NCBI GenBank assembly: GCA_047495785.1
Contig: JBLDXI010000012.1
Span: 1,302,001-1,366,000, forward strand
Length of the DNA: 64,000 nucleotides
Origin: Lepidodermella squamata
Taxonomy: Eukaryota > Animalia > Gastrotricha
Direction: 5' to 3'
Within the stretch, counting starts at the first letter, position 1. Every line of letters begins with the position of its first letter. Made by a program: the position numbers and the translations under genes. The notes under the pieces are model-generated. The model was not told the DNA's origin. It did no database searches and was given only the letters and a program-made list of their open reading frames with translations. This document shows, piece after piece, positions 862 through 43,216 of this stretch.

Positions 862-1453
862 ATGCGCGCTGTTTTTGCCTTAGCTGCTGTCGTCCTAATG
901 GCTTTTGGTAACTGAAATTTTCGAACTCCCAGAGAGTGATTAGTTTGTTGATGATATCTATACTATAGCTCTCTCCGAGGTTGAGGCTGGCCGTGGTAAC
1001 AAAGGCAAAAGCGTTTCGAAGAGCGTCTCGATCAGCGTGTCGTACAACCGGCAGCCGAAGAAGCACGCGATGAAGAAGCGCCCGGCCAAGAAGGCCTTCG
1101 TCGCTGGGCGCAAGCACCGCCGTGCCTCGTTCTCCAAGTCCGTGTCCGCGTCGGTGTCGGCCCGCACGAACAAGCACACCCGCAAGGTCTCCACCAAGAA
1201 GTTCATGCGCGTGCACAAGCGCGGATCCATGTCCGGCTCGTTCTCGCGGTCGGGCTCCTTCGGCGGCTACAACAAGAAGGGCGGCAACAAGCGCCACGGT
1301 GGCAAGAAGTTCGGTGGCAAGAAGTTTGGCGGAAAGAAGCACGGTGGCAAGCACGGCAAGGGCCGCAAGGGCAGCAAGAGCGGCAGCTACTCGGCCTCCA
1401 ACAACTTCTCCTACTCGGTTGCCGTCGAGACCGGTGCTGCTCCCAGCAAATAA
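862..1453 (+). CDS. Secreted polybasic (Ser-X)n protein, copy K1 (exons 862-907, 969-1453)
   Basis: Exon 1 encodes signal peptide MRAVFALAAVVLMAF; phase-1 GT-AG intron at 908-968; exon 2 is near-identical to six other copies and has strong C/G third-position bias. Confidence 0.9.
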
Positions 1454-2009
1454 ATGAGAATTTATATTGAAAACTGTATGGCTCAGGCTGAATAATTATG
1501 ATTGATTTTGAATAAATTATAGAAGTATGAAAAATCTTAGCTTCTCTTGCGATACCGCGTCAGGGAGGGTCGGAAAACGTGTGTTCTTCACAATAGCTGC
1601 TGATAAGTTGAACGTGCATCCCATTTCAAGGCCATTTTGGGGATCCATAATTGCACAATAGAGATGAAGATCACGAGCCCATGAGGACAACATGTTTGAG
1701 ACAAACATTTCCATTTCTAAAATGAAAAATTTTGTCGCTCGAAATTTTTTATCTCGTTAGATAGTGGCTCGGCTGGTATTATTATCGCCATATTACTACA
1801 GAAACCCACTTTTATTGAATACTTATTCAAATGGTTATCAGAGGGTTATGAGATCGACACAATCATGGATATGAACTAAAATCGCTTACAATTTCAACCT
1901 CCTGGCTGAATCTACTGCCAAAGCCACGCCAAGTTTTTCTTTGTGTCACAATAGCTTCAATCGCGTGCAGCGCGAAAGCACGAGCCGGTGGACTATACTT
2001 CGCGAATCT

Positions 2010-2043
2010 AATCGCGTGGCGTTGTTGACGCAGGCCCTATAAA
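2010..2043 (+). promoter_or_regulatory. sHSP core promoter: AATCGCGTG motif plus TATAAA (2038-2043)
   Basis: The same AATCGCGTG...TATAAA arrangement precedes all three sHSP copies, including copy B (26599-26631), whose promoter is otherwise diverged. Confidence 0.6.
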
Positions 2044-2153
2044 TTGCGATTTATTTTTTCGTTTAAATCATCACCTGCTTTTGCAATTTAAAGCTCACAG
2101 CAATCTTCTCGCTTTCATTTTCGTTCGTGTTTTGATCCTTCTCAAACTCTAAA

Positions 2154-3460
2154 ATGGCCTGCTCATACACCTCGATCCCCTCGACCTTCGCCGCTGCCTC
2201 TGGCTACACCAGCCCGATGAACGTCGAGAGCCTGCTCCGCAACAAGGTCGACATCTACTCGCCGTCGTCTGTTGAGCGCAGCCTCATCAACGCCGCCGTC
2301 CCGACCCCGTTCGCCGCCGCCGGCATCCACAACGTCAACGCCTTCGCCTCGTCCCCGATCGCCTACAACACCTTCGCCTCGCCGATCGAGTGCGGAGCCG
2401 AGACCGGCCGCGTCTTCGGTGCCGAGTGCGGTGCCCAGCTGGCCGCCATCGTCGCCGCCCGCCTCAACACCTTCGTCGGCCAGGAGGTGGCCGTCCGCAT
2501 CGGCGCCCAGTGGGGAGCCGAGATGTGCGCCAAGCTGGGTGCCGAGCTCGCCGTCAAGCTCGTCAACGGCTGGCCGGTCGAGCAGTGCGCCCGCTGGTGC
2601 TACACCTTCGGAGCCGAGCACGGCGCCGAACTGGGTGCCATCATCGCCCAGCGCCTGGGTGCCATCTACACCGCCGAGTTCGCCGCCCGCATCGGCGCCG
2701 AGCTCTTCGCCGACGTCTGCGCCAAGCAGTGCTACGTCATCGCCGCCCGCGTCGCCGAGTCGCGCTTCGGTGGTGCCCGCCTCGCCAACAACTGGACCGG
2801 CTCGTTCGAGCGCTTCGGTGGCCTCAACTACCCGACCACCTTCGGCCCCTTCGGCGCCAACACCTGGTCGAACAGCCTGTCGGCTGACAACAAGCTGTAC
2901 AACATCGCCTTCCGCCCGTCCTCCGAGGTCGAGCTCTACACCCTGACCCACCCGATCCGCATGATCGACGTCGAGGGCAACCGCCAGCTGTACCTGTGCT
3001 TCGAGCTCAAGGGCTTCAAGCCTGAGGAAGTCACCGTCACCCTGAACAAGGCCGAGCGCGCCGTCGTCGTCGAGGCTGCCCACGAGGCCAAGGACGGCAA
3101 GGAGCACACCGTCACCCGCAAGTACTCGCGCAAGTTCGTCCTGCCCGAGGTTAGTAAATCATTTCAATTTCAATCAACACTGACTTTAAGCTTTCTTTAT
3201 CTTTCTAGACCCTTGCCAAGATCGACCTGACCAAGGTTGAGCTCAAGTCGTGCCTGACCCAGGAGGGCCACCTCGTCGTCGAGTGCCAGCTGCCGAAGAT
3301 GACCACCGAGGAGATCGCCAAGTGCCCGACCATGTCCGAGCTGTACAACAAGCTGCCCGCCTTCGGAGGCTTCAACGCCGCCGTCCAGGCCTTCGGTGGC
3401 ATCAACGCCATCAACCGCCGTACCTGCGATGTCAAGCCCGTCACCGTCAAGACCGCCTAA
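2154..3460 (+). CDS. Small heat-shock (alpha-crystallin domain) protein with long N-terminal extension, copy A (exons 2154-3149, 3209-3460; ~415 aa)
   Basis: ACD motifs FELKGFKPEEVTV, RKYSRKFVLPE and KSCLTQEGHLVVEC; C-terminal V-T-V (IXI/V-type) motif; phase-0 GT-AG intron. Confidence 0.9.
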
Positions 3461-3787
3461 ATGAAATCTAACGAGAAGATGAGCTATAATGCGCAATGCT
3501 AAAGAACTTTGCTTGAGAGAAATTGTGATACCATTCGCCATTTGATGTGATACTCTTGTGTTATTTGCAGTTTTCTCAATACAGTAAAACAAGATATGTT
3601 GCGTAAAAATGGTCCGATTCCTACTTTATTGCAAAAACTGAGCAAAATCGACAAAGACGAAGTTCGCCTCCACGCCGTGAGGCAATTTTTTGCACAAATC
3701 AATACATTTTTATATGCAAATGATCTATCTGGTTACTGGATGCGAGACCGCAGAAGGCCTTCCAAAAAAATTTGCTACTTTAATTTT

Positions 3788-4020
3788 AAGATCATACTTC
3801 TTGGGATCATTTCTTTATGTAGATTTGCCCCAACGTCAGCCTCATCTGACGACAAACCCAAACCGCGATGACGAGACGTGGTGACTGGCCCTGAGCGCGA
3901 ACTTGGCCGCACTTGACTGGCTATCATTAGCCGGTCTAGTCGGCCGTTGATGAACGTTCCGGCCTGGTGGCTCTTTAATTAGGGCCACTTCCGGAGGGGT
4001 CAGTCGCTTTCAGAGCGGCT
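3788..4020 (+). ncRNA. U3: U3 snoRNA, copy 1
   Basis: 5' AAGATCATACTTC..GGATCATTTCT (boxes A'/A), box C' GATGACGA, box B GAGCGCGAA, box C TTGATGAA, box D-like CAGA closed by a CCGC/GCGG terminal stem, then a T-run; ~233 nt; second copy at 41225. Confidence 0.88.
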
Positions 4021-4778
4021 TTTTTTAAATAGAAGCAAAACTTTACTTTCGAACCTGTTTTATGTAGCTGATAGTCATAAAATCAGTATTTTCCCTCTAA
4101 TTAGTTGTCTCTAAATATCAGTATATCTCCATCGAGCAAAGAATGAGATCGAACGTCCACTTTCTTGTTGGTAAAAATTTGTTCTTGTTGGTACCTGAAA
4201 AACGCCACCTTGCAGTAGGGTTCTGCTGACATTGACTAATGGCCACTGTCACCTGGAGTAAACCGCGCTTAATCAAGGCTTGCTTCGATTCAGTTTGCGA
4301 ACCTTCCCAGATTATCGTAGGGATGATTTCCAGTTTTCGAGGTTCAATATCGAGTTCGAATTTAGGGATGTCTTCTCGAGCTTTACTGATTCAACAAGAC
4401 AGGGCTAGGCCAACGGGCAACGGGTGCTAACAAAGGGGACAACAATTTAATTGGATCCGTTGCTTCATGTATAAGGCGCAATAGTTACTTATGAAGCCTG
4501 GTTTTTGGTAAATCAGCTGCTCGAAAATATATGGTGAACTAATTTGACGACTATATTCGGGTTTTTCAATCCAATTACCAGTTGAAGACCGCATATAAAT
4601 TTCTACTGACCAATTAGCTGAAAATTTGTGGTTGATGATTATACTGAATTTCAATTATTTCCTGCGCTTCGATAAATGGCAGTTGCGGTATAAAAGGACG
4701 ATGGATGTTGAAGAAAAACATCAATCCAGCTCGATTTGAAATAATATATAATTTTCCCTCCGAGATTAAACCTTGAAG

Positions 4779-5360
4779 ATGCGTGCTGTTTTCGCTTTTG
4801 CTGCTGTCGTTCTTTTAGCCCTCGGTAAATCTCTGAACACATCGTCTGGTTCAATAATCCAACTCGTTTTTTTACTTTCAGCTTTCTCCGAAGCCGAGGC
4901 TGGCCGCGGAAATAAGGGCAAAAGTGTCTCGAAGAGCGTCTCGATCAGCGTGTCGTACAACCGGCAGCCGAAGAAGCACGCGATGAAGAAGCGGCCGGCC
5001 AAGAAGGCCTTCGTCGCTGGGCGCAAGCACCGCCGTGCCTCGTTCTCCAAGTCCGTGTCCGCGTCGGTGTCGGCCCGCACGAACAAGCACACCCGCAAGG
5101 TCTCCACCAAGAAGTTCATGCGCGTGCACAAGCGCGGATCCATGTCCGGCTCGTTCTCGCGATCGGGCTCCTTCGGCGGCTACAACAAGAAGCATGGCAA
5201 CAAGAAGGGCCACGGTGGCAAGAAGTTTGGTGGCAAGAAAGGCAAGAAGGGTGGCAAGCACGGCAAGGGTCGCAAGGGCAGCAAGAGCGGCAGCTACTCG
5301 GCCTCCAACAACTTCTCCTACTCGGTTGCCGTCGAAACCGGTGCTGCTCCCAGCAAATAA
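4779..5360 (+). CDS. Secreted polybasic (Ser-X)n protein, copy K2 (exons 4779-4824, 4882-5360)
   Basis: Same signal-peptide exon and phase-1 intron as the other copies; upstream TATAAAA; downstream AATAAA. Confidence 0.9.
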   Translation: MRAVFAFAAVVLLALGKSLNTSSGSIIQLVFLLSAFSEAEAGRGNKGKSVSKSVSISVSYNRQPKKHAMKKRPAKKAFVAGRKHRRASFSKSVSASVSARTNKHTRKVSTKKFMRVHKRGSMSGSFSRSGSFGGYNKKHGNKKGHGGKKFGGKKGKKGGKHGKGRKGSKSGSYSASNNFSYSVAVETGAAPSK

Positions 5361-5615
5361 ATAATTTCAATAAAAACTTTGCTTCAAAGATGATAATTTA
5401 TTCCATGATCTGAAATCTGAAGAATAAAATACAGAAATATCTCTATACTCCAGTATATCCTAATATTGCAATTGATTTGGAGGATGAAGGGAGCCCATTT
5501 TAGGAAAGAAATTAGCATTATTCAGCTAATTCCATTTTGAATATACAAATGAGACCGGTCGAAATCTCATCGCAATTTGTTTCGGTATTTATGGCCGGTC
5601 CGATTGTGTCAGAAT

Positions 5616-5632
5616 GTCAATCTTCGGATTGG

Positions 5633-5671
<39 letters not shown>

Positions 5672-5722
5672 GGCCCCTGCGCAAGGATGACACGCAAAAT
5701 CGTGAAGCGTTCCATATTTTTT
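5616..5722 (+). ncRNA. U6: U6 spliceosomal snRNA, copy 1
   Basis: 5' hairpin GTCAATC-TTCG-GATTGGC, ACAGAGA box, AGC triad, ISL GGCCCCTGCGCAAGGATGAC, 3' CGTTCCATATTTT Pol III terminator; ~107 nt. Confidence 0.97.
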
Positions 5723-6493: not shown

Positions 6494-8434
6494 TTAATCA
6501 ACTTCTTCGACAGTCGGGCCACGGTTGGTTGACGTCGAGCCAGCCGAGCGTGACTGATTGCCGCCGTCGGCCTTGCCAGGGTTGCTCGAAGAGCTGTTGC
6601 CGCCATGCAGTTTCGCCATAATTGGCGAGCAGACCTTCTGCAATTCCTGCGACTTGTACTCGATCTCGTCCTTCTCGGCGGTCGTGTTGCGATCGAGCCA
6701 CGAAATCACCTCCTGGCACTTGTCCTTGACAGTCTGCTTGTCACTCGCCGGCACATTCTCGCCCGCATCATCAACGGCTTGCTTGTACGAGTAGGCAAGG
6801 TGTTCGAGGCCGTTTCGAGCCGCAACTCGTTCCCGCTGCTTGTCGTCGTCGGCCTTGAATTTCTCGGCCTGAGCCACCATTCGCTCGACTTCTTCCTTCG
6901 ACAGCCGCTTTTCGTTCGTGATTTTGATCTTGTTCGATTTTCCAGTCGCCTTTTCGACGGCTGAAACGTTGAGGATGCAATTCGCGTCGATGTCGAACGT
7001 GACCTCGATTTGCGGGACACCGCGAGGCGCCGGCGGGATTCCGGTCAGGTCGAAGCGGCCCAACAAGTTGTTGTCCTTCGTCATCGCTCGCTCGCCCTCG
7101 TAGACCTGGATCGTCACGGCCGATTGATTGTCCGAGTACGTCGTAAAGGTCTGTGTGGCTCGAGTCGGCACTTTCGAATTGCGCTCCAGCAACTTCGCCA
7201 TCACCCCTCCAGCGGTTTCGATGCCGAGACTGAGCGGGATAACATCGACCAGCAGGACATCCTTGACAGTGTTGTCGGTCACGCCTGAGAGAATTGCAGC
7301 TTGAACAGCGGCGCCATACGCGACGGCCTCGTCCGGGTTGATCGACTTGTTGAGAGGCTTGCCCATGAAGTCGGTCAATAGCTTCTGCACCTTCGGAATG
7401 CGAGTCGAACCACCGACAAGCACGACCTCGTCGATCTTTGACTTGTCCAGCTTGGCATCTCGCAGGGCCTGCTCGACTGGTTGCATCGTCTTCTGGAACA
7501 GATCATTGCACAGCTCTTCGAAGCGAGCTCGCGTGATTTTCGAGTAGAAATCGACGCCTTCGTGCAGCGAGTCGATCTCGATGTTCGCCTCGGTGCTGCT
7601 CGACAGGGCTCGTTTCGCGCGTTCGCAGGCGGTTCGAAGGCGGCGCAGGGCTCGCGAGTTCTTCGATATGTCCTTGCCGTATTTCCGCTTGAATTCGTCG
7701 ACGAAGAAGTTGACCATGCGATTGTCAAAGTCCTCACCGCCCAGGTGAGTGTCGCCTGACGTAGCCAGCACTTCGAAGACACCGCCATCAACTGACAGGA
7801 TAGAAACATCGAAGGTTCCACCGCCAAGGTCGAAAATTAGGACCTTTTTCTCCTGCGACTGATGTTGTTTGTCGAGCCCGTAGGCGAGAGCAGCCGCCGT
7901 CGGCTCGTTAATGATTCGCATGACGTTGAGACCAGCAATCGCACCAGCGTCTTTCGTCGCCAGTCGCTGCGAGTCGTTAAAGTAGGCCGGAACCGTGATG
8001 ACGACATCGCGCACCTTGTGGCCCAGGTACGCCTCGGCGGTCTCTTTCATCTTGAGTAAGACCATGGACGAAATTTCCTCGGGCGCGAATCGCTTCGGCT
8101 CGCCCTTGTACTCGACCTCGATTTTCGGCTTGCCCGCCTCGTTGACAACCTTGAACGGCCAGTGCTTCATGTCGCTTTGGACGATCGGGTCGTCGAACCG
8201 CCGGCCGATGAGCCGCTTCGCGTCGAATACCGTGTTCTGCGGGTTCATCGCGACCTGGTTCTTGGCGCCGTCGCCGATCAGTCGCTCGTTGTCGGTGAAC
8301 GCGACGTAGCTGGGCGTCGTTCGGTTGCCCTGGTCGTTGGCAATTATTTCGACCTTGCCATTCTGGTAGACACCGACGCAAGAATACGTCGTGCCCAGGT
8401 CAATGCCAATAGCTCGTGAAGTTGATGTAGACAT
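6494..8434 (-). CDS. hsp70: Cytosolic, probably stress-inducible Hsp70 (intronless)
   Basis: Signatures [22 protein letters not shown] and [14 protein letters not shown]; C-terminal GPTVEEVD; first ATG at 8434 (the ORF track begins at an upstream non-ATG codon). Confidence 0.97.
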
Positions 8435-8558: not shown

Positions 8559-8622
8559 TATATACTGATTAAAGAACATTCTAGATAAATCAAGAAAATT
8601 CCAGAATGTTCGAGAATGTTCT
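8559..8622 (-). promoter_or_regulatory. Hsp70 promoter: TATA box and heat-shock elements
   Basis: TATATA at 8559-8564; alternating nGAAn/nTTCn arrays GAAcaTTC (8574) and GAAaaTTCcaGAAtgTTCgaGAAtgTTC (8594-8621). Confidence 0.9.
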
Positions 8623-9745: not shown

Positions 9746-10810
9746 TTCACTCCTCAACTTTCGAAGCCTTCGACAGGACTAGATCTTAATTCAAGCTCCA
9801 TTGTATCTGGTATATTTTGTGTTTTTTTTTAATTTTTATTACAATTTTTCAATATTTTTTAGCGATTTACAACAGTCTGGTCACTCTTGCAGGCTTCATC
9901 GGTGTTGCTTTTTCGTGTCCTTGCGTTGATAAATACTATTACCCCGTCACCAGTTCGAACTTGTCAGGTTCCATCGGAATTGCCGCCGTAGTAGTAGCGC
10001 TTGCTCTTCTCGGCAGTATTATCGTCAAATCAGCCGGCATTTGACTGATCAAGGTCTTGGCCTTACCGTAGGATTGGCCGCTCAGATCGCGCAACCGGGA
10101 ATCAAGGTAGGCGGCAAGCAGGAGCCCCGCGTCTTCAGCTGCTCGGGGAGCCGAGTTTCAAGGCGAGTCGCCACGTCGAGACGAAGACGACGCAAATCGT
10201 TGCTCTGAAATTCGGCGTCGTCACGCAGTAGGTAATTGATGGAATGGCGAATTGCGACGACGACGATTCCGCAGTGTGCATCAGCCACCTTACAATTAGA
10301 TAAAAATCAATTTTAGTACAAAGAAGTACATATTCATTACATTTTGACTCGCAAACTGATCGCTGATCGCAAACAGCGACTAATGCGCGGTGCGCGGAAT
10401 AGTGAGATATAAAATAATTGAGACCCTATCAGGAAGGCGTGTAACTGGAAAACCCATGTTGAGAACTTTTAGGGCTCAAACTCAAATTCGGAGCTGGAAC
10501 GACCATGAATTTAGAGTGTGCCATTCCATGAACGATGTTCAGATTGATTTGGCCGGAAAAGAAGTACAAGTGCTAAGGTTTTGAACTCTCGGGACGCATT
10601 ACATTTTTAATTTGACTGACAACAATTTTAACAGATATGACTTTCATTATGAGAATGTCAATGATCAGCACCCCATTAGGAGCGTCATTATAAGCTACGC
10701 TTCGAAAAATGGTTCTGACGCTATATAATCTCGACGAGATATAGAGAAGTAGCATCAATCCAATTCCATTCGAACTATTTATCCTCTCTTTCTCTTTCAA
10801 AACCAAAAAG

Positions 10811-11401
10811 ATGCGTGCTGTTTTCGCTCTTGCTGCTGTCGTTCTCTTGGCCCTCGGTAGAAATTTGAACACATAGCCTGGTTTAATAATCTCGCTAATT
10901 TTTCTAATACTTTCAGCTTTCTCCGAAGCTGAGGCTGGCCGCGGAAATAAGGGCAAAAGTGTTTCGAAGAGCGTCTCCATCAGCGTGTCGTACAACCGGC
11001 AGCCGAAGAAGCACGCGATGAAGAAGCGCCCGGCGAAGAAGGCCTTCGTCGCTGGGCGCAAGCACCGCCGTGCCTCGTTCTCCAAGTCCGTGTCCGCGTC
11101 GGTGTCGGCCCGCACGAACAAGCACACCCGCAAGGTCTCCACCAAGAAGTTCATGCGCGTGCACAAGCGCGGATCCATGTCCGGCTCGTACTCGCGGTCG
11201 GGCTCCTTCGGCGGCTACAACAAGAAGGGCGGCAAGAAATTCGGCGGAAAGAATAAGTTTGGCGGCAAGAAGTTTGGTGGCAAGAAGGGTGGCAAGCACG
11301 GCAAGAAGGGCCGCAAGGGCAGCAAGAGCGGCAGCTACTCGGCCTCGAACAACTTCTCCTACTCGGTTGCCGTCGAAACCGGTGCTGCCCCCGCTAAATA
11401 A
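10811..11401 (+). CDS. Secreted polybasic (Ser-X)n protein, copy K3 (exons 10811-10856, 10917-11401)
   Basis: Same structure as K1/K2; TATATAA upstream. Confidence 0.9.
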
Positions 11402-11650
11402 AAACATTTCAGAAAGGTGTTGAAATTACATTCTTCAATGATAATTTATTCCGAAGTCTAAAATTGAAATAAATTTGATACGATCTTTAATGGTCTTAAT
11501 TTTGAGACAGCCAGCTCGTTTCTAGCGACGAACTGGCTAATTTCTTTTATTTCCAATTGAAACGCGAATTATGAATAGTCAAAACAGATCACTTGAAAAT
11601 GTACTACAGCGCGGATTTCGTTTAAATAGCTGGTCTGAGTCTTCGTTATT

Positions 11651-11667
11651 GTCAATCTTCGGATTGG

Positions 11668-11706
<39 letters not shown>

Positions 11707-11756
11707 GGCCCCTGCGCAAGGATGACACGCAAAATCGTGAAGCGTTCCATATTTTT
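11651..11756 (+). ncRNA. U6: U6 snRNA, copy 2
   Basis: Identical to copy 1 through the T5 terminator. Confidence 0.97.
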
Positions 11757-12704
11757 ATCTTCAGTTCACAGTGGTGACAATTGCAAAATAATATGGACTG
11801 CATCGCATGCATAGCAGTCGCGTCGCAGTGTTTTATTAGATTCCAGGATTTCAAATTACACCAAGCTTTTTATCAACACCGATGGTAAATCCAATTGAGG
11901 TTTGAGAATTTTGGATAATCACCGTATCACCTATGAGGTACTTCCTATCACGGCTTATCTCCTGCTGGGATTAAAAATCACCTTATTTTCGTATTTGCTG
12001 TCAAATCGCATGCCCCACCAGCTTTTGCTCGATCCCTTGGCCTCTTTTTCACACTAGGCGAGTTGGACTATGGCTGAGAAATGCGGCAAGCTTAGAAAAA
12101 TGGGCTGAATGGATCCGAATAAAAATATCCGTTCTTTCTGAAAAAGCGATTCGAGAGCTTTCGAAAACCTTTGACGGCTTAGTCAATGCGTTTATCCCAA
12201 TATTGATGTTGTCGTTTACTTAATTATTCAAGGGTTCAAGGGTTCAAGGCATAGACATAGAGAGATATCTTATTATTTCCAGTGGATTAGATTTGACAGT
12301 TTTGAATGCTTTAATGACGTCAAAATGACGTCCCTTGCCCTATTTTGTTGCAGTTGTGAGCGAATTGAAAACAAATCAAACATGTAACGGTGACGGGTTC
12401 TCGCGATCACGGGATCATGACCGACGACCCGACTTGTTTGATGTTAGGATGATTGGGCAAAAACACACTTCGGAAGTTACGAAACTAAGGCATTTTATTA
12501 AGGCTAGAGCTAAGCTACTTTATGATCTCCGAAACGGTAGATGATCTAAACGTATCAAGGTAGGCCTTTTTATAGGCGGAATGGCATCACGCCAGACGCC
12601 AGACAGAAATAACAATTCGTGGCGTGACACGTGCTATTTATTAAAGGTGTCACCGCCACAAAACAAAAATGACTCAAACAGAACGCTCAAATCTAATCTA
12701 CTGA

Positions 12705-15229: not shown

Positions 15230-15882
15230 TGTTAACCGGGGAAATTCTAGGCACAATGATGTTTGATGATCCGAGTTTTTCGTACTCGAAACAAATCTGG
15301 TTCGCGCCGATCTTGGCCAAAAATCGGGCTCTTGTCCCAGAATTGACCTGCCCAACCTCGGGATGTCAGGTCAAATTACTCGGCATTGATATCACAAAAG
15401 GCAAGAAGATGGCTGTCTCTAATACCTACGCCATGATCAAAGAACCAAGTGATGCTTCCAGCATTGCTACGGATGGAAATTTAATCTTTAAACTGGATAG
15501 CCTGAACTCTAAAATGATTGTTACGGGCGTCGCCGATGGAAGGGGGGTGTCTGAATTCTCCTGTGATACCACGGGCCAGGGAAGTAGAAGTTCGCGGCCT
15601 TACACCGTCGTCACGGATGGTTTCATCTTCTCCGAGGCTTGCAAAGGACTGTCGCTGATGGATAGGAAAACTGGCAAGTTGATCGACAAAACGCACGACA
15701 CGGTATCTGGGCTGTCCTATTACAAGAATGCTGTCTATTTCCGGTATTATGATGCCGGTACTAAGAAGCAAGCAATCGGATCTCTCGGCTTGCAAGCAGC
15801 TAAATCTATTAGCCCGAAGTTTGTTGGAAGTTTTGGAATCACCTTTCTGTGTGCTATTTTTGCAGCTTTCATGGACTTCTAA
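15230..15882 (+). pseudogene. 5'-truncated paralog of the secreted beta-propeller gene at 34961-36337
   Basis: Aligns by eye from TGEIL onward (GIDITKGKKMAV, ATDG, VTDGFIFSEACKGL, GLSYY, YFRYYD, KSISPK); upstream sequence is unrelated and has no signal peptide. A distant missing exon cannot be excluded. Confidence 0.65.
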
Positions 15883-16681
15883 CTGAAAAATTATTTTTCA
15901 ATAGCTTGTATCCCCAACTTATAACCGGATAATTCTTCCCCAACGCATCAAGTTATACTTGAAGTTGGAGCTTTTGAGCTTTGCGTTCATCTTTCACTCT
16001 GAGACCTGTATAATACGTGAATCTTATTCGGTGTTATTGTGATTTTTTGCAAGTTTTTGTGTAGTAGTCTGCTGACTTGGTATTTCAAGAGATGATAAAA
16101 AATAAAAAATGTATCTTGATTATGCGACCATTGATTGGTCATTTCGGTTTATAATTTTGGGGTCGAAATTGGTCGAAATATTTGTTTCCGCTTAAATTTC
16201 AAAATTCCTCTATATTCCTTAGATTTTGACTCGTAAACTGATCGCTAAACCAGCGAATAATGCGCGGAATAGTGAGATCCGAAGATCAGGAAGGCGTGAA
16301 ACTTGAAAATCCATGATGAGAAATCCTAGTGTTTAAAACTGAAATTCGTAGCTGAAACCATAAATTTAGGGTGTGATTTCCATAAATCAATGTTCACAGA
16401 AACTTGGTCGGATAAAATAATTTCGAAAACGGTGTAATAGTGCTAAACGCTTCTAAGGTTTCGATGCCTTGCCTTTTTTAATCTGACTGACAAAAGACCT
16501 TTCAGATATAACTTTCATTATGAGAATGTCAATGATCAGCACCCCATTAGGAGCGTCATTATAAGCTACGCTTCGAAAAATGGTTCTGACGCTATATAAT
16601 CTCGACGAGATATAGAGAAGTAGCATCAATCCAATTCCATTCGAACTATTTATCCTCTCTTTCTCTTTCAAAACCAAAAAG

Positions 16682-17269: not shown

Positions 17270-17518
17270 AAACATTTCAGAAAGGTGTTGAAATTACATT
17301 CTTCAATGATAATTTATTCCGAAGTCTAAAATTGAAATAAAGTTGATACGATCTTTAATGGCCTTTATTTTGAGACAGCCAGCTCGTTTCTAGCGACGAA
17401 CTGGGTAATTTCTCTGATTTCCAATTGAAACGCGAATTATGAATATTCAAATCAGATCACTTGAAAATGTACTACAGCGCGGATTTCGTTTAAATAGCTG
17501 GTCTGAGTCTTCGTTATT

Positions 17519-17535
17519 GTCAATCTTCGGATTGG

Positions 17536-17574
<39 letters not shown>

Positions 17575-26477: not shown

Positions 26478-26742
26478 ATAAAATATAATAAAGGTGTTTT
26501 TCAAAATTGAGTGGCAAGTGAAACGCGGCGTAGTTTTGACACGCGCCGAGATGTTCTTTCCTGTGTTGAAAAATGAAGCAGTGTGACACGAAAATTAAAA
26601 TCGCGTGCCGTCAAAACAGTTCGACTATAAAATAGGGCCGATATTCTACGTTTAAATCATCACCTGCTTTTGCAATTTAAAGCTCACAGCAATCTTCTCG
26701 CTTTCATTTTCGTTCGTGTTTTGATTATCCTCAAACTCTAAA

Positions 26743-28043: not shown

Positions 28044-28427
28044 ATGAAAGCCACATCCAAAGAGAAGATGAGCAATAATGCGCAATGTTAAAGAACTTTG
28101 CTTGAGAAAAAGTGTGATACCATTCGATGTGATACTCTAGTGCTATTTGCAGTTTTCCTCGAGACAGTAAAACAAGAGATGTTGCGTAAAAATTGCCTGC
28201 TATGACTCAGTCCGATGGTTGAATTTTAGTTACGTTTTAGTTGGTCTAACAGACTAGTAGTGTCCAGGTTCGCCTCCACGTCGCGAGCCATTTTTTATAT
28301 CCAAATAATCGGTATTATGCAAATATTGTGTGCGAAAAGAGCAAGCAAAATAATCAGGAATTAGAGTTATAGGGTCATGGTAATCATATACAGGAATATT
28401 GTTTGTAGGAACTTGCGTATCAAGAGC

Positions 28428-28964
28428 TTAACCTGACTTGTCGAGGCAGGCTTTGACCTTTTTCCAGTAAACATCAGTCGAGCTTGATTTGCAACCTTTC
28501 GGGCCTCCGTTGTGAATTCGAGCGTGATCCTAATTAACGGCGCAATAATTTATATGGCGAAGTTGTACGGGTGACAAATGTTAGCTATACCTCACAAGTT
28601 GGTGCCTTTCCACCTGTGCAATAGGTTCCGTAACGGTCCATATAATTATTAATGCATTTCTCTGAACAAGCCATTGAATTTGAGCACTTTTTCCAGTCGG
28701 AATCGACGCCGCCTTTCTCCTTGCAATCGGTGTGGTAGACTTGCTTGATTTGGTACGGACCGCAAGAAAGCGAGCCGAGGTCCATTATACAGCCGAAATT
28801 TACATTACAGTTGCTCTCCACCTTAAAAAACGCTTCAGTAAATATGCCGCAATTAGGTATCGTCAAATTACCTGGCAGATGCATTTCAAACACTTGTCAT
28901 CGACACGTGCCGCTGCTAACGCAAAAATAGCAGCGAAAAAGAAACAAAACTTCGAAGAAATCAT
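28428..28964 (-). CDS. Invertebrate-type (i-type) lysozyme / destabilase family (exons 28964-28872, 28821-28591, 28529-28428)
   Basis: Signal peptide, CLKCICQVESNC, MDLGSLSCGPYQIK, CEDHARIHNGGPKGC, YWKKVKAC; the muramidase Glu and Asp positions are present. Confidence 0.93.
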
Positions 28965-33784: not shown

Positions 33785-34286
33785 GGGGCTAATTGGCCAC
33801 CCTCATCCTTATAATGGGTTTTTAATATTTAGTGATTGTGATGGTTGAATGGTCGAGTGGTTGTGATGCGTCCATCAGAACTTGAGTGATCTGATGAGCG
33901 ACGGTTCGAATCCTCATAAAGCAGCATTTTTTTGCTCCGCATTTCATTTTTTTAATTTTTTTGTTTTAATTGTCCATTTTAATAATTTTTAATTAGTTTC
34001 TCCGTTTTTTCTGAGAGTTTTATTGCTGAGCAACTTTTAAACGTCTCCCGAACAAAAAAATGTCCGGCATACGTGGTGCTAGTGGAATAATTAAAATGGA
34101 AAATTAATAACAAAATTAAAAAAATTAAATGCGGAGCAAAAAAATGCTACTTTATGAGGATTCGAACCGTCGCTCATCAGATCACTCAAGTTCTGATGGA
34201 CGCATCACAACCACTCGACCATTCAACCCTCACAATGACTAAATATTAAAAACCCATCATAAGGATAAGGGTGGCCAATTAGCCCC
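33785..34286. repeat. ~200-bp inverted repeat, each arm carrying a tRNA-like Pol III A box, B box and T-run
   Basis: Arms 33785-33990 and 34086-34286; TGGTCGAGTGG (A box), GGTTCGAATCC (B box), T7. Confidence 0.85.
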
Positions 34287-34960
34287 CATCATTGAGTTTT
34301 CCATGGGGTAATTTGGCCACAATCACCTAGCCATACCTGTGCATCGCCTGGGGTCGCGGTTTTTTTTGCTGTCATCTACGACGAAAATGGTCGAAGGAAA
34401 AAAATTCATCTGAACATCAAACCTCGTGATTGGCTCCAGGTAATTCAATTTAGAGGGGTCATTTTTGCCTCCCTAAACTCACCTCTGTGCAACAACATGC
34501 TGTGACGTCATTTCGGGACATACGAGGCTGAAAATTTGCAGGCTTGTAGGAGGCTTGTTGATAATCGTCCCCGTAAATTTTTGTGAAGTTTTACCCTGTA
34601 GTTTTTGAGCTATCAATAAAATGGTGAAAACCTCAATTTTTGGCCAATTAGCCCCAAAGGTTCATTTTGCCCCAAATGACGGTACGGTATTATCAAAATG
34701 CGTGTATGTATCAAAATGTCGACAGATTTCAGGATTCTCGCCCGATCAGCCTAAATCTATATACGTGGCTCAAATTTGACATAAATATTAAAAAAAAATT
34801 TATTGGGCCCTTCATCTCTCTTGCAGCGATTATCAGAAATCGACAGCGAGTAGTATCAAAAGATTCACAAGGCTCATCGTAAAGAGGATAGGCGTCGAAG
34901 AAAAACGATGAATCAGAATGAGAGCTCAATAATATAGCTTTGGTATAATGTGTTGTTCAA

Positions 34961-36337
34961 TTAGAAGGCACTGAAAACGGCGAAAATAGCACAAAGAGAA
35001 GTGATTCCTAAGCTTCCAACAGACTTCGGGCTGATAGATTTACTTGCTAGTAAGCTAACAGCTCCGATTGCTTGCTTATCCAGTTCTTCATCATAGTACC
35101 GGAAATACAGCGCATTGTTATAATAAGACAGCCCAGCGACCTGCTCATGCGTTCCATCAATGATGATGCCAGTTTTTTTGTACATGACGGTTAACCCTTT
35201 ACATATTTCGGAGAAGATGAACTCATCCGTTACTATAGTGTTAGGCCGTGCACTTCTACCCTTGCCCCACTTGACACATGGAAAAACCGCGACCAAGTTT
35301 CCGGTGATAACGTCAATGACAACCAATTCCTTAGTAGAATATCTCGGCGCATAGATGTGCTTTCCATCCGTGGCCATATCGGCAGGTGAATCGGTCCAAG
35401 ATGAGCTGAATTTGTAAGTCCAATCGACAGCCATCTTCGCGCCTCTTGTTATGTCAATACCGTGGAATTTCACCTCACAATTCGTGAAGATGTCGACGAG
35501 GCAGGTCTTAGAAGCGACAATAGCTCGATTTCCAATTAACAACGGTATGAACCTGCTTGCTGCCGAGGTAAACAAGGTGGGGTCTTGAAATTGAAGTGTG
35601 TCAAGAATTTCCCCACTTTCGGCGTCTATCTGTGTCAACGAGAAGGCATGTGATACAAAGAGTCGAGAATCTTCGCTTAACGAAGCTGCGTAAAGTACGG
35701 AATTGTCAACAGTCGGAATGGTGACTGTCACTGTTGCATTCCACAGCATTTTTTCCTTCGCATTCCATTCGTAAAACCCAATAACATTTTTCGACTGCTC
35801 GGCAACCGTGTACCAGAATTCCGAGCTTATTGCATCGGAAAAGTCAAATCCCTCGCTGTACGTATTCGTATCAAATTGGAGCAGTGTCATACTTCCGAAG
35901 TGTTTGTTGCTCAAATCGACTGAAATCTGCCTGACAGTAGCCGATTGCTTCGAGTTTAAAGTCTCGCATCGAACAAAGAGCGAAACTTTACCGCCGAGTT
36001 CTGCTATTATCGGCTGGCCGCATACCAAATATTTCACACAACCAGCTAAGCAGATACGAGTAACGCGACGGCCATTGACCGCGCTGAAGACGTTAAGCTG
36101 GCCGTAACCCTCGATTTGAAAAATCAATCCGTCGTGGGCAACGATTTGTCCAATTCCCATTGTTTTGAAATCGAGCGTTGCGTTAAACTTCCGCTTAAGC
36201 ACAACGCATTTACTCGCCGCGATAGACTCGGCTTTGTAACCAGTGTGAGCTTGATCTCCGCCTAAGTTGGTCCATGAAGATCGAAAGTCAGCATAAGCTG
36301 AAGCCAGTAGTAAGGAAATTATGGTCAGCGATTTCAT
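34961..36337 (-). CDS. Intronless secreted, possibly GPI-anchored beta-propeller (PQQ-like repeat) protein, 458 aa
   Basis: Signal peptide MKSLTIISLLLASAYA, motif WTNLGGDQAHTGY, propeller-type blades (LNVFSAVNGR, IDAESGEIL, IDVITGNLV), hydrophobic C-terminus; paralog fragment at 15230. Confidence 0.75.
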   Translation of the reverse strand: MKSLTIISLLLASAYADFRSSWTNLGGDQAHTGYKAESIAASKCVVLKRKFNATLDFKTMGIGQIVAHDGLIFQIEGYGQLNVFSAVNGRRVTRICLAGCVKYLVCGQPIIAELGGKVSLFVRCETLNSKQSATVRQISVDLSNKHFGSMTLLQFDTNTYSEGFDFSDAISSEFWYTVAEQSKNVIGFYEWNAKEKMLWNATVTVTIPTVDNSVLYAASLSEDSRLFVSHAFSLTQIDAESGEILDTLQFQDPTLFTSAASRFIPLLIGNRAIVASKTCLVDIFTNCEVKFHGIDITRGAKMAVDWTYKFSSSWTDSPADMATDGKHIYAPRYSTKELVVIDVITGNLVAVFPCVKWGKGRSARPNTIVTDEFIFSEICKGLTVMYKKTGIIIDGTHEQVAGLSYYNNALYFRYYDEELDKQAIGAVSLLASKSISPKSVGSLGITSLCAIFAVFSAF

Positions 36338-38140
36338 TGCAGTTGCACTGCTGTGGCCAGTTAGCAGTTAGTAGGAAACTGATATGAATATATTGCCGAA
36401 ATTTTGAGCATATAATATAGACTGGAGTCTGGAATTGATTGATATAGCAATCGCAGTAAAAGACTGATAAAGCTTGAGGCTGTTGTCTGTGAATCGAACC
36501 TTGAAGTAGGCGGACTTATCTGCTCAGCGCGCTTCATACACATAGGGGTATACAAACTTTATCAGCAAAGAGCGCTCTATATAGTATATAGTTACGCCCT
36601 TCACCCAGAACGAGGCCAGCCAGCCATACTGTCCTTGTACGAGTTATGATAGAAATGATTCATCTGTACAATCATCTTGGTGTGTGACATTTTATACTTT
36701 TCGGGTGTGTCTGCACAAGAGATCAAGCCAACCGAAGGATTGGTGGTGGCCGAGTCGCATTTCTCGCAAACGCTGCTGCTTCGAAACGTCGAAAATGACC
36801 CGCGCGATGAGCCACCCGTAAAGCAAGCTAAACCCATGCCGATCTTCAATTTCTCGAATTGCTCCGTCGTTATTAACAATTAATCCGGCCCAAACACTTG
36901 TTTTAAAGTTTAAACATTCTAATAAAGGTTATTCACTTGTTCACTCGTTTGGTCAGAGTCTGAAGGTTGTAGTAAAGGGACTGGGAACGGAAATTGAAGT
37001 TGTGCAACATTATTTCAGGTGAGAGGTTTTCCCGAATTTTCGAGAGCATCAATTGATTTTCGAAAATAAAAAATCCACCCTAATCGTTTGAGCGGGCAGA
37101 AACATCGGGCAGAATCACTTTTTCCGTCTAGGCAAAAAATAACCAACTGGGCAGGAACGTATCAACCTGCCAGCAAGCTGTTGCATGTAATCCGACTATC
37201 GGCCTGAAGACGCTAAGAAGTGCATTTCTCCTATGATTGAGGCTAAAAAACGATACAGAAATAGTGTTTCTGTATTCCTGTACAATACAGAAACACTTTT
37301 ATTAAGACGGACTTTTTATTATCGCATTTTCCTATATAAATGGCGTACAAGATCACTTTTCCCCGCACTTTCTAGCTACGTTTCTCCGAGTTTTTAGCAG
37401 ATACAGAGGAGAAAAGCAATCTCGGATTTACTCCGAATACAGAAACACTTTTCTTGTACTCATGACTGTATTCATCTTCGGTTCCTGCGGAACCTCGATT
37501 CATACAGTCATTCGTACAAGAAAAGTGTTTCTGTATTCTGAGCCATCCAAGATTGCTTAATTGAATGATGCTATACCTGCCCAATTAGCTTTGATTAGCG
37601 GAAGTTATTTCGTCTAAATCACGGCAAATTTTTCACTGTAATCCGGATAACTTTCCCAGACCTTCGAGTGGGCCTTTCACTTACTAATTGGGAATCGCGA
37701 TTCGCTGTCACTTTTCAGGCGCATGGTCGTCAGGTGTATTGACTGGGTAATGACAGGCCTTTGAATTATGGCAACACGGAGCTGTTTGGATGTGATGGAA
37801 TAAAAAATAATTCAGCATTAAGCAATGCACACCTGCACAATGCATGCAATGAACAATGTTACCGACTGAAAATTGTATGACTTGAAGACTGATGAGCAAT
37901 AGAAAGCTGACTACAGAATGAGATAGATCAAATTTGAATCAAAATTTAATTGCGATCTCATTAAATCAGTTACGCTGTGTAGAGATTTCCAATTAGCAGA
38001 TCGTTAGCAGCTTATAATTCAGTTGCTACGCTTCAATATGCTCTCTTGGTATATAATCTCGACGCGATTTCGGAGATGTATCACCATTCAAGTTCCATTC
38101 GAGCTATCCATTCCTCGTTTTCTCAATTCAAACCATAAAG

Positions 38141-38715
38141 ATGCGCGCTGTTTTCGCTTTGGCCGCTGTCGTTCTCTTGGCCCTCGGTAAATATTTGAAC
38201 ACATCGTGTCAGGTCCAATAATCTTACTCGTTTTCTTACTTTCAGCTTTCTCCGAAGCTGAGGCTGGCCGTGGTAATAAGGGCAAAAGTGTCTCGAAGAG
38301 CGTCTCCTTCAGCGTGTCGTACAACCGGCAGCCGAAGAAGCACGCGATGAAGAAGGCCTTCGTCGCTGGGCGCAAGCACCGCCGTGCCTCGTTCTCCAAG
38401 TCCGTGTCCGCGTCGGTGTCGGCCCGCACGAACAAGCACACCCGCAAGGTCTCCACCAAGAAGTTCATGCGCGTGCACAAGCGCGGATCCATGTCCGGCT
38501 CGTACTCGCGATCGGGCTCCTTCGGCGGCTACAACAAGAAGGGCGGCAACAAGCGCCACGGTGGCAAGAAGTTTGGCGGCAAGAAGTTCGGAGGCAAGAA
38601 GCACGGTGGCAAGCACGGCAAGGGTCGCAAGGGCAGCAAGAGCGGTAGCTACTCGGCCTCCAACAACTTCTCCTACTCGGTCGCCGTCGAGACCGGTGCT
38701 GCTCCCGCTAAATAA
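38141..38715 (+). CDS. Secreted polybasic (Ser-X)n protein, copy K6 (exons 38141-38186, 38246-38715)
   Basis: Same structure; in-frame loss of RPAKK between two AAGAAG repeats. Confidence 0.9.
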
Positions 38716-39586
38716 AAACATTTCAGAAAGAAAAGCGTCGTATGTGCTTCTTCAATGATAATTTATTCCGAAGTCTAATATTGAAATTTGAAATAAAGTT
38801 GAAATGTTCAACGACCCAGAGATTCGACCTAGTAGTTAGCAAGACCTTTGAAAAATAAGTCATAATTCATAAGGTAACACTTGCCGCAGATGAAACAGTT
38901 GTAGTGTCGACAGCATCCAACCCCCCGTGTCCCGTGTCTGCGCCCCGTGTGAACTCTACCAGCGTGAATCTTGAGGCCGCGTTATAAAAGTTTTATTGCA
39001 AACCTTAAAAAGCATCTTGCTGCAATTAAAATCAATATTCTGTTTATTTCAAAACTGAAAATTGTTGGCCGAATAATTTATAGGTCGCGCGTAATTTTTC
39101 AAACTACGGGCTCTATTGAGCAATTTTCTTTTTACACAACGGTAAAAAGAGGCTCAGCGCTATGCTGGGGATGATCCCCTCAAAACACATCAGTTACTAA
39201 CTTTGAACAACAACCAAAAATCAAAAGTCTAGTCGCGGTTATCAAAGTGTTATATGGATATTATGGATGTGAACCTAAATCACTCCAAACTTAAACCTCT
39301 AGCTACATCATAGAGTGATTCATTCCGTTCTCTATGAGATACAGCCACTGCTGGAGCTATGCCAATTTTTCCTCCTTGTCACAATGGCTTCAATCGCGTG
39401 CAGCGCGAAAGCACGAGCCGGTGGAATATACTTCGCGAATCTAATCGCGTGGCGTTGTTGACGCAGGCCCTATAAATTGCGATTTATGTTTTCGTTTAAA
39501 TCATCACCTGCTTTTGCAATTTAAAGCTCATAGCAATCTTCTCGCTTTCATTTTCGTTCGTGTTTTGATCCTCTTCAAACTTTAAA

Positions 39587-40884
39587 ATGGCCTGCTCATA
39601 CACCTCGATCCCCTCGACCTTCGCCGCTGGCTACACCAGCCCGATGAACGTCGAGAGCCTGCTCCGCAACAAGGTCGACATCTACTCGCCGTCGTCTGTT
39701 GAGCGCAGCCTCATCAACGCCGCCGTCCCGACCCCGTTCGCCGCCGCCGCCGGCATCCACAACGTCAACGCCTTCGCCTCGTCCCCGATCGCCTACAACA
39801 CCTTCGCCTCGCCGATCGAGTGCGGAGCCGAGACCGGCCGCGTCTTCGGTGCCGAGTGCGGTGCCCAGCTGGCCGCCATCGTCGCCGCCCGCCTCAACAC
39901 CTTCGTCGGCCAGGAGGTGGCCGTCCGCATCGGCGCCCAGTGGGGAGCCGAGATGTGCGCCAAGCTGGGTGCCGAGCTCGCCGTCAAGCTCGTCAACGGC
40001 TGGCCGGTCGAGCAGTGCGCCCGCTGGTGCTACACCTTCGGAGCCGAGCACGGCGCCGAACTGGGTGCCATCATCGCCCAGCGCCTGGGTGCCATCTACA
40101 CCGCCGAGTTCGCCGCCCGCATCGGCGCCGAGCTCTTCGCCGACGTCTGCGCCAAGCAGTGCTACGTCATCGCCGCCCGCGTCGCCGAGTCGCGCTTCGG
40201 TGGTGCCCGCCTCGCCAACAACTGGACCGGCTCGTTCGAGCGCTTCGGTGGCATCAACTACCCGACCACCTTCGGCCCCTTCGGCGCCAACACCTGGTCG
40301 AACACCCTGTCGGCTGACAACAAGCTGTTCAACATCGCCTTCCGCCCGTCCTCCGAGGTCGAGCTCTACACCCTGACCCACCCGATCCGCATGATCGACG
40401 TCGAGGGCAACCGCCAGCTGTACCTGTGCTTCGAGCTCAAGGGCTTCAAGCCTGAGGAAGTCACCGTCACCCTGAACAAGGCCGAGCGCGCCGTCGTCGT
40501 CGAGGCTGCCCACGAGGCCAAGGACGGCAAGGAGCACACCGTCGCCCGCAAGTACTCGCGCAAGTTCGTCCTGCCCGAGGTTAGTAAATCACTGAACCTT
40601 CACCTACTTAAATGTTAATGCCATCTTTCTAGACCCTTGCCAAGATCGACCTGACCAAGGTTGAGCTCAAGTCGTGCCTGACCCAGGAGGGCCACCTCGT
40701 CGTCGAGTGCCAGCTGCCGAAGATGACCACCGAGGAGATCGCCAAGTGCCCGACCATGTCCGAGCTGTACAACAAGCTGCCCGCCTTCGGAGGCTTCAAC
40801 GCCGCCGTCCAGGCCTTCGGCGGCATCAACGGCGTCAACTGCCACGTCAACGCCGTCAAGCCCGTCACCGTCAAGACCGCCTAA
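39587..40884 (+). CDS. Small heat-shock protein with long N-terminal extension, copy C (exons 39587-40579, 40633-40884)
   Basis: As copies A and B. Confidence 0.9.
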
Positions 40885-41224
40885 ATGAAAGCCACATCCA
40901 AAGAGAAGATGAGCAATTATGCGCAATGTTAAAGAACTTTGCTTGAGAGAAATTGTGATACCATTTGATGTGATACTCTAGTGTTATTTGCAGTTTTCCT
41001 CGAGACAGTAAAACAAGATATGTTGCGTAAAAATGGTCTGAGAATTCAGTATCATTCTTATTTAATTGCAAAAGATCGTGGAATTCGACAAAGAAGAAGT
41101 TCGCCACCACGCCATGAGCCATTTTTTTTGCAAAAATCCATACATTTTTGTATGCAAATGACCTATCTGGTTGCTGGATGCGAGACCGCAGAGGGCCTTT
41201 CAAAAACTTTGCTACTTTAATTTT

Positions 41225-41466
41225 AAGATCATACTTCTTGGGATCATTTCTTTATTTAGATTTGCCCCAACGTCAGCCTCATCTGACGACAAACCCAAAC
41301 CGCGATGACGAGGCGTGGTGACTGGCCCTGAGCGCGAACTTGGCCTCACGAGGCCGGCGACCTTTCCAGGGTGGCTGGGCTCGAGGTGGCCGTTGATGAA
41401 CGTTCCGGCCTGGTGGCTCTTTAATTAGGGCCACTTCCAGAGGGGTCAGTCGCTTTCAGAGCGGCT
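41225..41466 (+). ncRNA. U3: U3 snoRNA, copy 2
   Basis: All boxes as in copy 1; different hairpin between boxes B and C. Confidence 0.88.
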
Positions 41467-42329
41467 TTTTTTAATGAAAAACAAAACCTGAATCGTTCCT
41501 CAAAACCACGTTTGAAAATATCTCAGAATAATAAATATTTTTTAGGTTTCCGTTAGAGATGATATAGCCATCAAGCAATCACTTCATCAATTTATCATGA
41601 AATCAGAAATCATTAAATCAGTCCGACGAATCTCAAAGTTATCAAAGCATGATGATATCCGCCTATTCGTCCAGTCGCCGGCGAATTATTCTTTTTAGCA
41701 TTAATAAGCTATAACTTCAGCAATCCATTTTATTATTGATAAAAAATCCCAAGTAAAAATTGGACAGAGGCTGCTGTAACTTGGATTAATCTGCACTCAA
41801 CCAAGGCTAAATCACAACCTCGTTTTGGCAAGTGATTTATTTTGTGCAGCTTCGTAGGTGTGCAGAGGAATTGTTTTGAGCTTTGGAGTCTCGAAATTCA
41901 ATAACAATTTCTTCGAATCGAGATACCTACTGTAAAAGGTAGGGAATTTTGCTCAACAATTTTCCGAAATTTAATTTTATTGTTTGATGTAGGTAGGTAC
42001 ATCAAACAACAGTCCGTTGCTAATATGTTATAGGCTCAATGATGACTTGTGAAGGCTATATCAGCTTGAATACATGGTAAAATGTGAAATAATTTGTTAG
42101 GATGGTTTTTCGAGTTATCAATCCAATTACCAATTGAAGACCCGATGCATTTCTACTGGTAACCAATTAGCCGACAATTATATTGATGATTACGCTCGAT
42201 TCAATTATTTGCCGCGCTTCGAGAATTAACGATTCCGGTATATAAAGACGATGGATATTAAAGAAAAATCATCAAGCTAAATTTGACTTAATCAATATAT
42301 AATTTTCGCTCAAATATCAAACCATAAAG

Positions 42330-42898
42330 ATGCGTGCTGTTTTCGCTTTGGCTGCTGTCCTTCTTATGGCTCTCGGTAATCTTTGAAAGCATTGTTTGGT
42401 CCAATAATCTTACTCGTTTTCTTACTTTCAGCTTTCTCCGAAGCTGAGGCTGGCCGTGGTAATAAGGGCAAAAGTGTCTCGAAGAGCGTCTCCTTCAGCG
42501 TGTCGTACAACCGGCAGCCGAAGAAGCACGCGATGAAGAAGCGCCCGGCCAAGAAGGCCTTCGTCGCTGGGCGCAAGCACCGCCGTGCCTCGTTCTCCAA
42601 GTCCGTGTCCGCGTCGGTGTCGGCCCGCACGAACAAGCACACCCGCAAGGTCTCCACCAAGAAGTTCATGCGCGTGCACAAGCGCGGATCCATGTCCGGC
42701 TCGTACTCGCGGTCGGGCTCCTTCGGCGGCTACAACAAGAAGCACGGCAGCAAGCGCCACGGTGGCAAGAAGTTTGGCGGCAAGAAGGGTGGCAAGCACG
42801 GCAAGGGTCGCAAGGGCAGCAAGAGCGGCAGCTACTCGGCCTCCAACAACTTCTCCTACTCGGTCGCCGTCGAGACCGGTGCTGCTCCCGCTAAATAA
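42330..42898 (+). CDS. Secreted polybasic (Ser-X)n protein, copy K7 (exons 42330-42375, 42432-42898)
   Basis: Same structure; promoter resembles K2, 3' UTR resembles K6. Confidence 0.9.
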
Positions 42899-43110
42899 AA
42901 ACATTTCAGAAAGAAAAGCGTCGTATGAGCTTCTTCAATGATAATTTATTCCGAAGTCTAATATTGAAATAAAGTTGAAAAGATCTTCGCTAGTCTTCAT
43001 TTCTCCTTAATTCCAATTTACCAATGAATTTTGAATATTCAAATCAGATAAACTGAAATTTTTCCGCATCGCGGATTCGGCTCAAATGGCTGCTTGAAGT
43101 TGTCGTTATT

Positions 43111-43127
43111 GTCAATCTTCGGATTGG

Positions 43128-43166
<39 letters not shown>

Positions 43167-43216
43167 GGCCCCTGCGCAAGGATGACACGCAAAATCGTGA
43201 AGCGTTCCATATTTTT
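43111..43216 (+). ncRNA. U6: U6 snRNA, copy 4
   Basis: Identical to copy 1 through the T5 terminator. Confidence 0.97.

Follow-up and report, generated by a model that had tools for sequence, protein, structure and literature searches.

The window analysed here is a 64,000-nucleotide (nt) stretch of the genome of the gastrotrich Lepidodermella squamata (contig JBLDXI010000012.1, positions 1,302,001 to 1,366,000 of the forward strand), with a G+C content of 43.8%; the published genome value for this species is 43% (PMC11660948). It carries two families of protein genes, one for a basic secreted-type protein (here termed K) and one for a small heat-shock protein (sHSP), together with genes for the U6 small nuclear RNA (snRNA) and the U3 small nucleolar RNA (snoRNA). 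Small-RNA genes were called across the window by Rfam at gathering thresholds, the protein families were defined from open reading frames and splice sites, and database searches were run exon by exon. Exactly six RNA genes were found in the window, four U6 and two U3, all on the + strand. As the first-pass annotation had reported, every U6 gene lies on the same strand 3′ of a K stop codon, with gaps of 255 nt (K2), 249 nt (K3), 249 nt (K4), and 212 nt (K7) where about 210–260 had been claimed, and both U3 genes lie 3′ of an sHSP stop codon, at 327 nt (sHSP1) and 340 nt (sHSP3) where about 330–340 had been claimed. The order K–sHSP–U3–K–U6 was likewise found twice, at 862–5721 and 38141–43216, and the K–U6 sub-unit twice more by itself (K3–U6b and K4–U6c). 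K1, K5, and K6 have no U6 gene, and sHSP2 has no U3 gene, just a relic of a U3 upstream region. The genes and associated features are as follows (aa, amino acids).

862–1453, + strand: K1, secreted-type Lys/Gly/Ser-rich basic protein, 176 aa, 61-nt intron; no U6 behind
2154–3460, + strand: sHSP1, 415 aa, with a long Gly-Ala-Glu helical N-terminal part; intron 3150–3208
3713–3723, + strand: putative U3a proximal promoter element core, TATGCAAATGA; CAAAT at −71 to −67
3788–4019, + strand: U3a snoRNA gene, RF00012, 109.9 bits, full length, boxes aligned; run of seven T (T7) at 4020–4026
4779–5360, + strand: K2, 174 aa, 57-nt intron; U6a behind
5616–5721, + strand: U6a snRNA gene, RF00026, 115.4 bits; core 5542–5552; TATA-like box at about 5586–5593
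10811–11401, + strand: K3, 176 aa, in a 1.43-kb duplicate with K4; U6b behind
11651–11756, + strand: U6b snRNA gene, RF00026, 115.4 bits
16682–17269, + strand: K4, 175 aa; U6c behind
17519–17624, + strand: U6c snRNA gene, RF00026, 115.4 bits; core 17444–17454; TATA box 17489–17496
24287–24847, − strand: K5, 169 aa, inverted; no U6 behind
26743–28043, + strand: sHSP2, 414 aa; intron 27736–27791; no U3 gene behind
28267–28327, + strand: U3-upstream relic 3′ of sHSP2, homologous to 3659–3723 through the promoter core; core match 28298–28308
38141–38715, + strand: K6, 171 aa; no U6 behind
39587–40884, + strand: sHSP3, 414 aa; intron 40580–40632; U3b behind
41225–41465, + strand: U3b snoRNA gene, RF00012, 100.2 bits; core 41151–41161; T7 at 41466–41472
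42330–42898, + strand: K7, 170 aa; U6d behind
43111–43216, + strand: U6d snRNA gene, RF00026, 115.4 bits; core 43036–43046

The K family comprises seven intact two-exon genes encoding 169–176 aa, with an intron of 51–61 nt, and its translated product opens with a hydrophobic, signal-like segment and continues as a very basic chain rich in Ser, Lys, and Gly. K matched no Pfam family, and no relatives were found by a word search of proteins or in the Atlas. K5 lies inverted between the first exon (23755–24045) and the later exons (25431–26477) of a Cys-loop ligand-gated channel gene, and is therefore probably nested in an intron of that gene. The sHSP family consists of three intact two-exon genes encoding 414–415 aa, with an intron of 53–59 nt and an HSP20 domain (PF00011, E 2.8e-07, 31 bits against a cut-off of 20.8). 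A word search returned three distant database relatives, which match in the alpha-crystallin domain only, and no relatives of the N-terminal part were found in protein or metagenome collections, the metagenome scan having been made with exon 1. Codon bias is extreme in both families, the G+C content at third codon positions (GC3) being 0.80–0.94 versus about 0.5 in neighbour genes, which suggests that K and sHSP are very highly expressed.

The small-RNA genes appear to be complete. The U6 covariance match is full length in all four copies (model positions 1–105; gathering score, 44), and the four U6 bodies are identical. In the U3 alignment, the 5′ hinge/box A region, the GAUGA-type C′/C boxes, and the terminal stem are all in place; the variable hairpin differs between U3a and U3b and still folds in both. 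The identical U6 bodies and the folding of both U3 hairpins fit purifying selection on working genes. Self-comparison of the window revealed no U6-like DNA beyond the four genes.

Upstream of all four U6 genes, a conserved element at about −82 to −60 is accompanied by a TATA-like box at −30 to −23, and a run of five T (T5) stands at the 3′ end. Judged by their position and conservation, the upstream elements are probably functional promoter parts. The CAAAT core of the U3 genes lies at −71 to −67, which is exactly the U6 distance; a TATA box at −30 is absent, and T7 follows directly 3′ in both copies. A T7 run is an RNA polymerase (Pol) III-style stop, which is not expected of an animal U3 gene. 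The promoter-core motif has six matches in the window versus 1.0 expected, five before U6 or U3 genes and one in the sHSP2 relic, and the search revealed no further gene with such a core in the window.

No U3 body lies 3′ of the sHSP2 relic, where the sequence is unrelated and matches no RNA family in Rfam. The relic is followed by a TATA-like TTATAG (28367–28372), its distance to the expected start about 6 nt shorter than that of the U6 TATA box, and by a T5 run (28459–28463) about 70 nt past the expected start (region 28298–28465). This orphan promoter would be either dead or the promoter of a short RNA of no Rfam family. In addition, a B-box-like 11-mer, GTTCGCCTCCA, followed by a T-run, stands about 100 nt before each U3 gene (3661–3690 and 41098–41128) and is retained in the relic (28269–28298). 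Seen by eye only, this element could be all that remains of a tRNA gene; ARAGORN and Rfam give no support. ARAGORN found no tRNA gene in the window at its normal threshold and no tRNA genes or relics upstream of U6 and U3 at 80%, with inconsistent noise only at 70%, and Rfam in E-value mode found no tRNA relics there.

The pairings share a common ancestry. All four K-to-U6 spacers can be aligned over their full length, between the stop codon and the U6 start, and have in common a block of the 3′ untranslated region (UTR), a poly(A) signal, the promoter element, and the TATA-like box. The K2–U6 spacer differs chiefly by an insertion of about 60 nt, and its local alignment with the K7 spacer gave z = 8.4. 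K3–U6b and K4–U6c are one 1.43-kb duplicate (10330–11761 vs. 16212–17629), and the sHSP-to-U3 region is a single continuous block with 93% identity (1922–4041 vs. 39355–41487). The homology of the spacers within each pairing indicates one or two ancestral juxtapositions that were later copied. To judge from these alignments, the six adjacencies count as one or two independent events.

The same holds for the five-gene modules, whose spacers are still homologous in matching order, weakly but significantly (z = 6.4 and 5.2), with control mismatched spacer pairs giving z < 1. The upstream 300 nt of the positional partners K2 and K7 are 70% identical. No clear homology was detected in the DNA flanking the modules, where z was 3.0 upstream, within the shuffle range, and −0.8 downstream. 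Such order-preserving paralogy, with homology lingering in the spacers, is what a segmental duplication leaves. The copies do not form a mixed tandem repeat of fixed unit, being 5–37 kb apart and separated by unrelated genes, with three of seven K genes lacking U6 and one of three sHSP genes lacking U3. The placement of the pairs is far from random, yet it is accounted for by common descent of the copies.

The distribution of identity along the copies is strongly mosaic. The first-pass annotation was right that the spacers have diverged: in a global alignment, they are 35–60% identical, as against 98–100% for the coding parts. Among the sHSP copies, identity is 99.5–99.9% in exon 1, 95–99.6% in exon 2, and 92–96% in the first 150 nt of the 3′ UTR, whereas the introns, though lying between near-identical exons, are only 52–64% identical. 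The contrast is clear between sHSP2 and sHSP3, in which 992 of 993 nt of exon 1 are identical and the intron is 52% identical. In the K family, exon 2 is 91–99% identical, while upstream regions and most introns are at 40–55%, and K1 has only exon 2 in common with the other K genes. The K and sHSP introns are unique and do not belong to a repeated intron family. Differing synonymous codons in sHSP number 1–3 of 402–414, versus 18% predicted from the genes' own codon usage, so that codon bias alone was rejected as the source of exon identity (P ~1e-30). Moreover, the comparison of sHSP introns with synonymous sites gave Fisher P values of 1e-18 to 1e-25, and the longest identical run in sHSP is 511 nt, versus 73 expected. 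K6 resembles its neighbour K7 (91% in the intron, 99% in exon 2, and also over the first ~95 nt of the 3′ UTR), unlike its positional partner K1. Since identity follows function rather than distance, and K6 is like K7, the pattern bears the signature of old duplications with repeated sequence exchange, which neutral DNA escaped, and from it we infer that the homogenising process was interlocus gene conversion.

The near-identical part of sHSP2 and sHSP3 tracks the mature mRNA (26649–28193 vs. 39493–41034; see also 2154–3460). It begins about 94 nt before the ATG, which is about 25–30 nt past each copy's own TATA box, omits the intron (52%, random level), and stops about 150 nt past the stop codon, close to a probable AGTAAA poly(A) signal. 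The C-terminal tail of sHSP1 carries a 24-nt patch with 12 differences that alters seven of eight consecutive residues relative to sHSP2 and sHSP3; the patch lies within 3399–3432 (vs. 40823–40856), and the exon is elsewhere identical. It represents either an old patch that escaped conversion or diversification of the tail.

The U6-less K1, K5, and K6 are intact, with GC3 of 0.81–0.83 and a codon bias like that of the other K genes. Without U3, sHSP2 is intact too, and its exons 1 and 2 each carry a single difference from sHSP3, over 993 and 252 nt, respectively. These intact unlinked copies indicate that neither the K–U6 nor the sHSP–U3 linkage is needed, and both are apparently dispensable.

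Taken together, the arrangement most probably arose when adjacent genes were passively co-duplicated in a compact region, prone to duplication, of a small invertebrate genome; it does not look like a module built to a purpose. Of the interpretations offered in the first-pass annotation, passive co-duplication is the one upheld here, by the homologous spacers, the residual homology in the same order, and the intact unlinked K and sHSP copies; selection for adjacency to open loci bound by SNAPc and matched scaling of splicing and ribosome capacity found no support in the sequence, and both are weakened by the dispensable linkage. In the scenario that we propose, an ancestral stretch would have carried K with U6 about 250 nt behind it and sHSP with U3 about 330 nt behind it. 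A block of about 5 kb with all five genes would have been copied in one event, and the K–U6 sub-unit in at least two more, while single K and sHSP genes would have been copied without an RNA partner or would have lost it later. Introns and spacers would then have drifted almost to randomness since duplication, with exons, promoters, and RNA genes kept alike by purifying selection and interlocus gene conversion, and selection for dosage would retain each member. As each U6 and U3 gene has its own proximal promoter element, it would be a self-contained passenger beside K or sHSP.

Two observations weigh against passive co-duplication with conversion. Of the seven K copies, four have kept the adjacency, as have two of the three sHSP copies, despite saturated neutral DNA, and a random-level intron amid near-identical exons is not the simplest outcome of ordinary DNA gene conversion. 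With regard to the second, the mRNA-like pattern of sHSP identity may reflect a barrier that heterology sets to ordinary gene conversion or, less conventionally, transcript-templated repair.

The first of these observations bears on an alternative in which the adjacency itself is under selection, either because a U6 gene bound by SNAPc and Pol III, or a U3 gene, would limit read-through from a very highly transcribed gene in front of it, acting through its bound promoter complex as terminator, roadblock, or insulator, or because a busy K or sHSP gene would hold chromatin open for the small-RNA promoter. Between them, these two variants are unlikely. The pairs are tight and co-oriented, with about 40–80 nt from the likely K poly(A) signal to the U6 promoter element; they have been retained although the spacers are saturated; and the extreme codon bias of K and sHSP suggests very high expression of the genes in front. 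However, pairs descending from one or two ancestral juxtapositions provide no replication, an intact gene stands without its RNA partner in three K cases and one sHSP case, sHSP2 shows no visible effect of having had its U3 lost or cut off, and indels vary the length of the K–U6 spacer from 212 to 255 nt. It is correspondingly improbable that placing a self-contained snRNA-type gene just behind a very highly expressed gene has a function in this animal and is maintained by selection, although, if true, functional adjacency would explain why the K–U6 and sHSP–U3 pairs persist amid decayed neutral DNA.

The small-RNA genes might promote duplication, with heavily transcribed Pol III-type genes stalling replication forks, end-points falling there, and duplicated units ending at U6. 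The K3/K4 duplicate, the youngest in the set, has a sharp right edge, its homology ending exactly at the U6 terminator, and a left flank that is 82% identical across 570 nt; moreover, all four K–U6 homology blocks and both modules finish at the U6 3′ end. However, K3/K4 is the single informative pair, its junctions carry neither target-site duplication nor microhomology, and the older edges may just mark the limit of selected sequence. An effect of this kind is improbable, and it would supplement passive co-duplication rather than replace it. Transport of K–U6 by a mobile element was also considered and was rejected, as the K3/K4 edges show no target-site duplication or terminal signature and the introns form no repeated family.

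An assembly artefact, whether from uncollapsed haplotypes or from amplification chimeras, is very improbable. One published L. squamata assembly was made from multiple-displacement-amplified DNA, a chimera-prone method (PMC11660948), and the window has two palindromic stretches, at 33785–34286 and 37414–37558. However, the copies share a single contig, have different genes around them, and are all intact, and they are 6–12% diverged, with saturated spacers and different introns, where artefacts would be near-identical. The arms of the two palindromes are 86% and 82% identical, respectively, and these stretches could be fold-back elements or, should the assembly derive from amplified DNA, chimeric artefacts. 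Matched dosage, in which shared amplification would scale splicing (U6) and ribosome-making (U3) capacity to the massive expression of two proteins in a single cell type, can be set aside almost entirely: all four families are raised in copy number in the same region, but every K and sHSP gene has just a single tiny intron and thus places little demand on splicing, U6 and U3 appear to carry their own housekeeping-type promoters, and the copy numbers are unequal (7 K to 4 U6; 3 sHSP to 2 U3).

The window contains further genes and duplicates. An intron-less HSP70 gene lies on the − strand at 6494–8434, and a perfect array of overlapping heat-shock elements (8594–8621) stands about 160–190 nt upstream of it; an exact-product look-up for this HSP70, made with synteny in mind, returned nothing. 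No three-unit heat-shock element was found before any sHSP gene in the window, suggesting that the sHSPs may not be heat-induced, and no strong array was found before K genes either. Heat-shock elements were therefore rejected as a common regulator, the strong array standing before HSP70 alone. Other features are a destabilase/i-type lysozyme exon on the − strand (28588–28893; PF05497, E 4.6e-16) and a latrophilin-like adhesion receptor gene on the + strand (44953–46593) with SUEL lectin, HRM, and GAIN domains. Local duplicates, at 55775–57258 vs. 58439–59942, 15584–15890 vs. 34953–35259 (inverted), and 20659–21470 vs. 22362–23127, comprise two Cys-loop channel genes with 84% identity, a family of 247- and 458-aa proteins without a Pfam match (76%), and a non-coding repeat (79–84%). 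These other duplicated families indicate that the region is generally duplication-prone.

The locus shows clearly that a multi-gene module of seemingly designed form can come from local duplication and gene conversion, and it illustrates that part of a U6 or U3 family can expand by riding with amplified protein genes. It should be of use for annotation in an animal group that has been little studied, and it warns against treating paralogous copies as independent evidence of linkage. If the linkage did prove functional, it would add a new kind of coupling between Pol II and snRNA-type transcription units in animals.

Interlocus gene conversion can be confined to the coding parts of duplicated genes in concerted evolution. 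The present copies agree with that model in their near-identical exons, including synonymous sites, their diverged non-coding flanks, their mosaic structure, and a neighbour that is closer than the positional partner. They differ from its usual form in the extremity of the contrast, a 53–59-nt intron at random level standing between exons that are 99.5–99.9% identical, and in the close match of the homogenised part of sHSP2 to the mature mRNA. The putative promoters can be compared with the type-3 external snRNA promoters of animals, which consist of a proximal element plus TATA for Pol III U6 genes and of the element alone for Pol II snRNA genes (for example, the snRNA promoters of insects; PMC1761439). 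The U6 genes here, with an element, a TATA-like box, and a T-run, and the U3 genes, with the core and no TATA, resemble this arrangement, but both U3 genes are directly followed by T7.

Linkage of snRNA genes to other repeated genes has precedents. The histone repeat of Hydractinia carries 5S rRNA, U1, U2, and tRNA-Arg genes (PMC5011920), and U2–U5, U1–U2–U5, and 5S–snRNA linkages occur in fishes and oysters (PMC3464664). As in those repeats, snRNA genes stand here beside unrelated, highly expressed genes with which they have been co-copied and kept alike, and, as in Hydractinia, the unit includes protein-coding genes. Unlike the head-to-tail arrays of a fixed unit in Hydractinia, fishes, and oysters, the copies here are scattered over 42 kb among unrelated genes, and the unit itself varies (five-gene, two-gene, and single-gene), with some members lacking an RNA partner. 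Among the papers searched, none was found to report U6 or U3 partnered with a secreted protein or an sHSP. What is new here is the partners, U6 with an orphan secreted protein and U3 with an sHSP, whereas snRNA genes within other repeats were already known.

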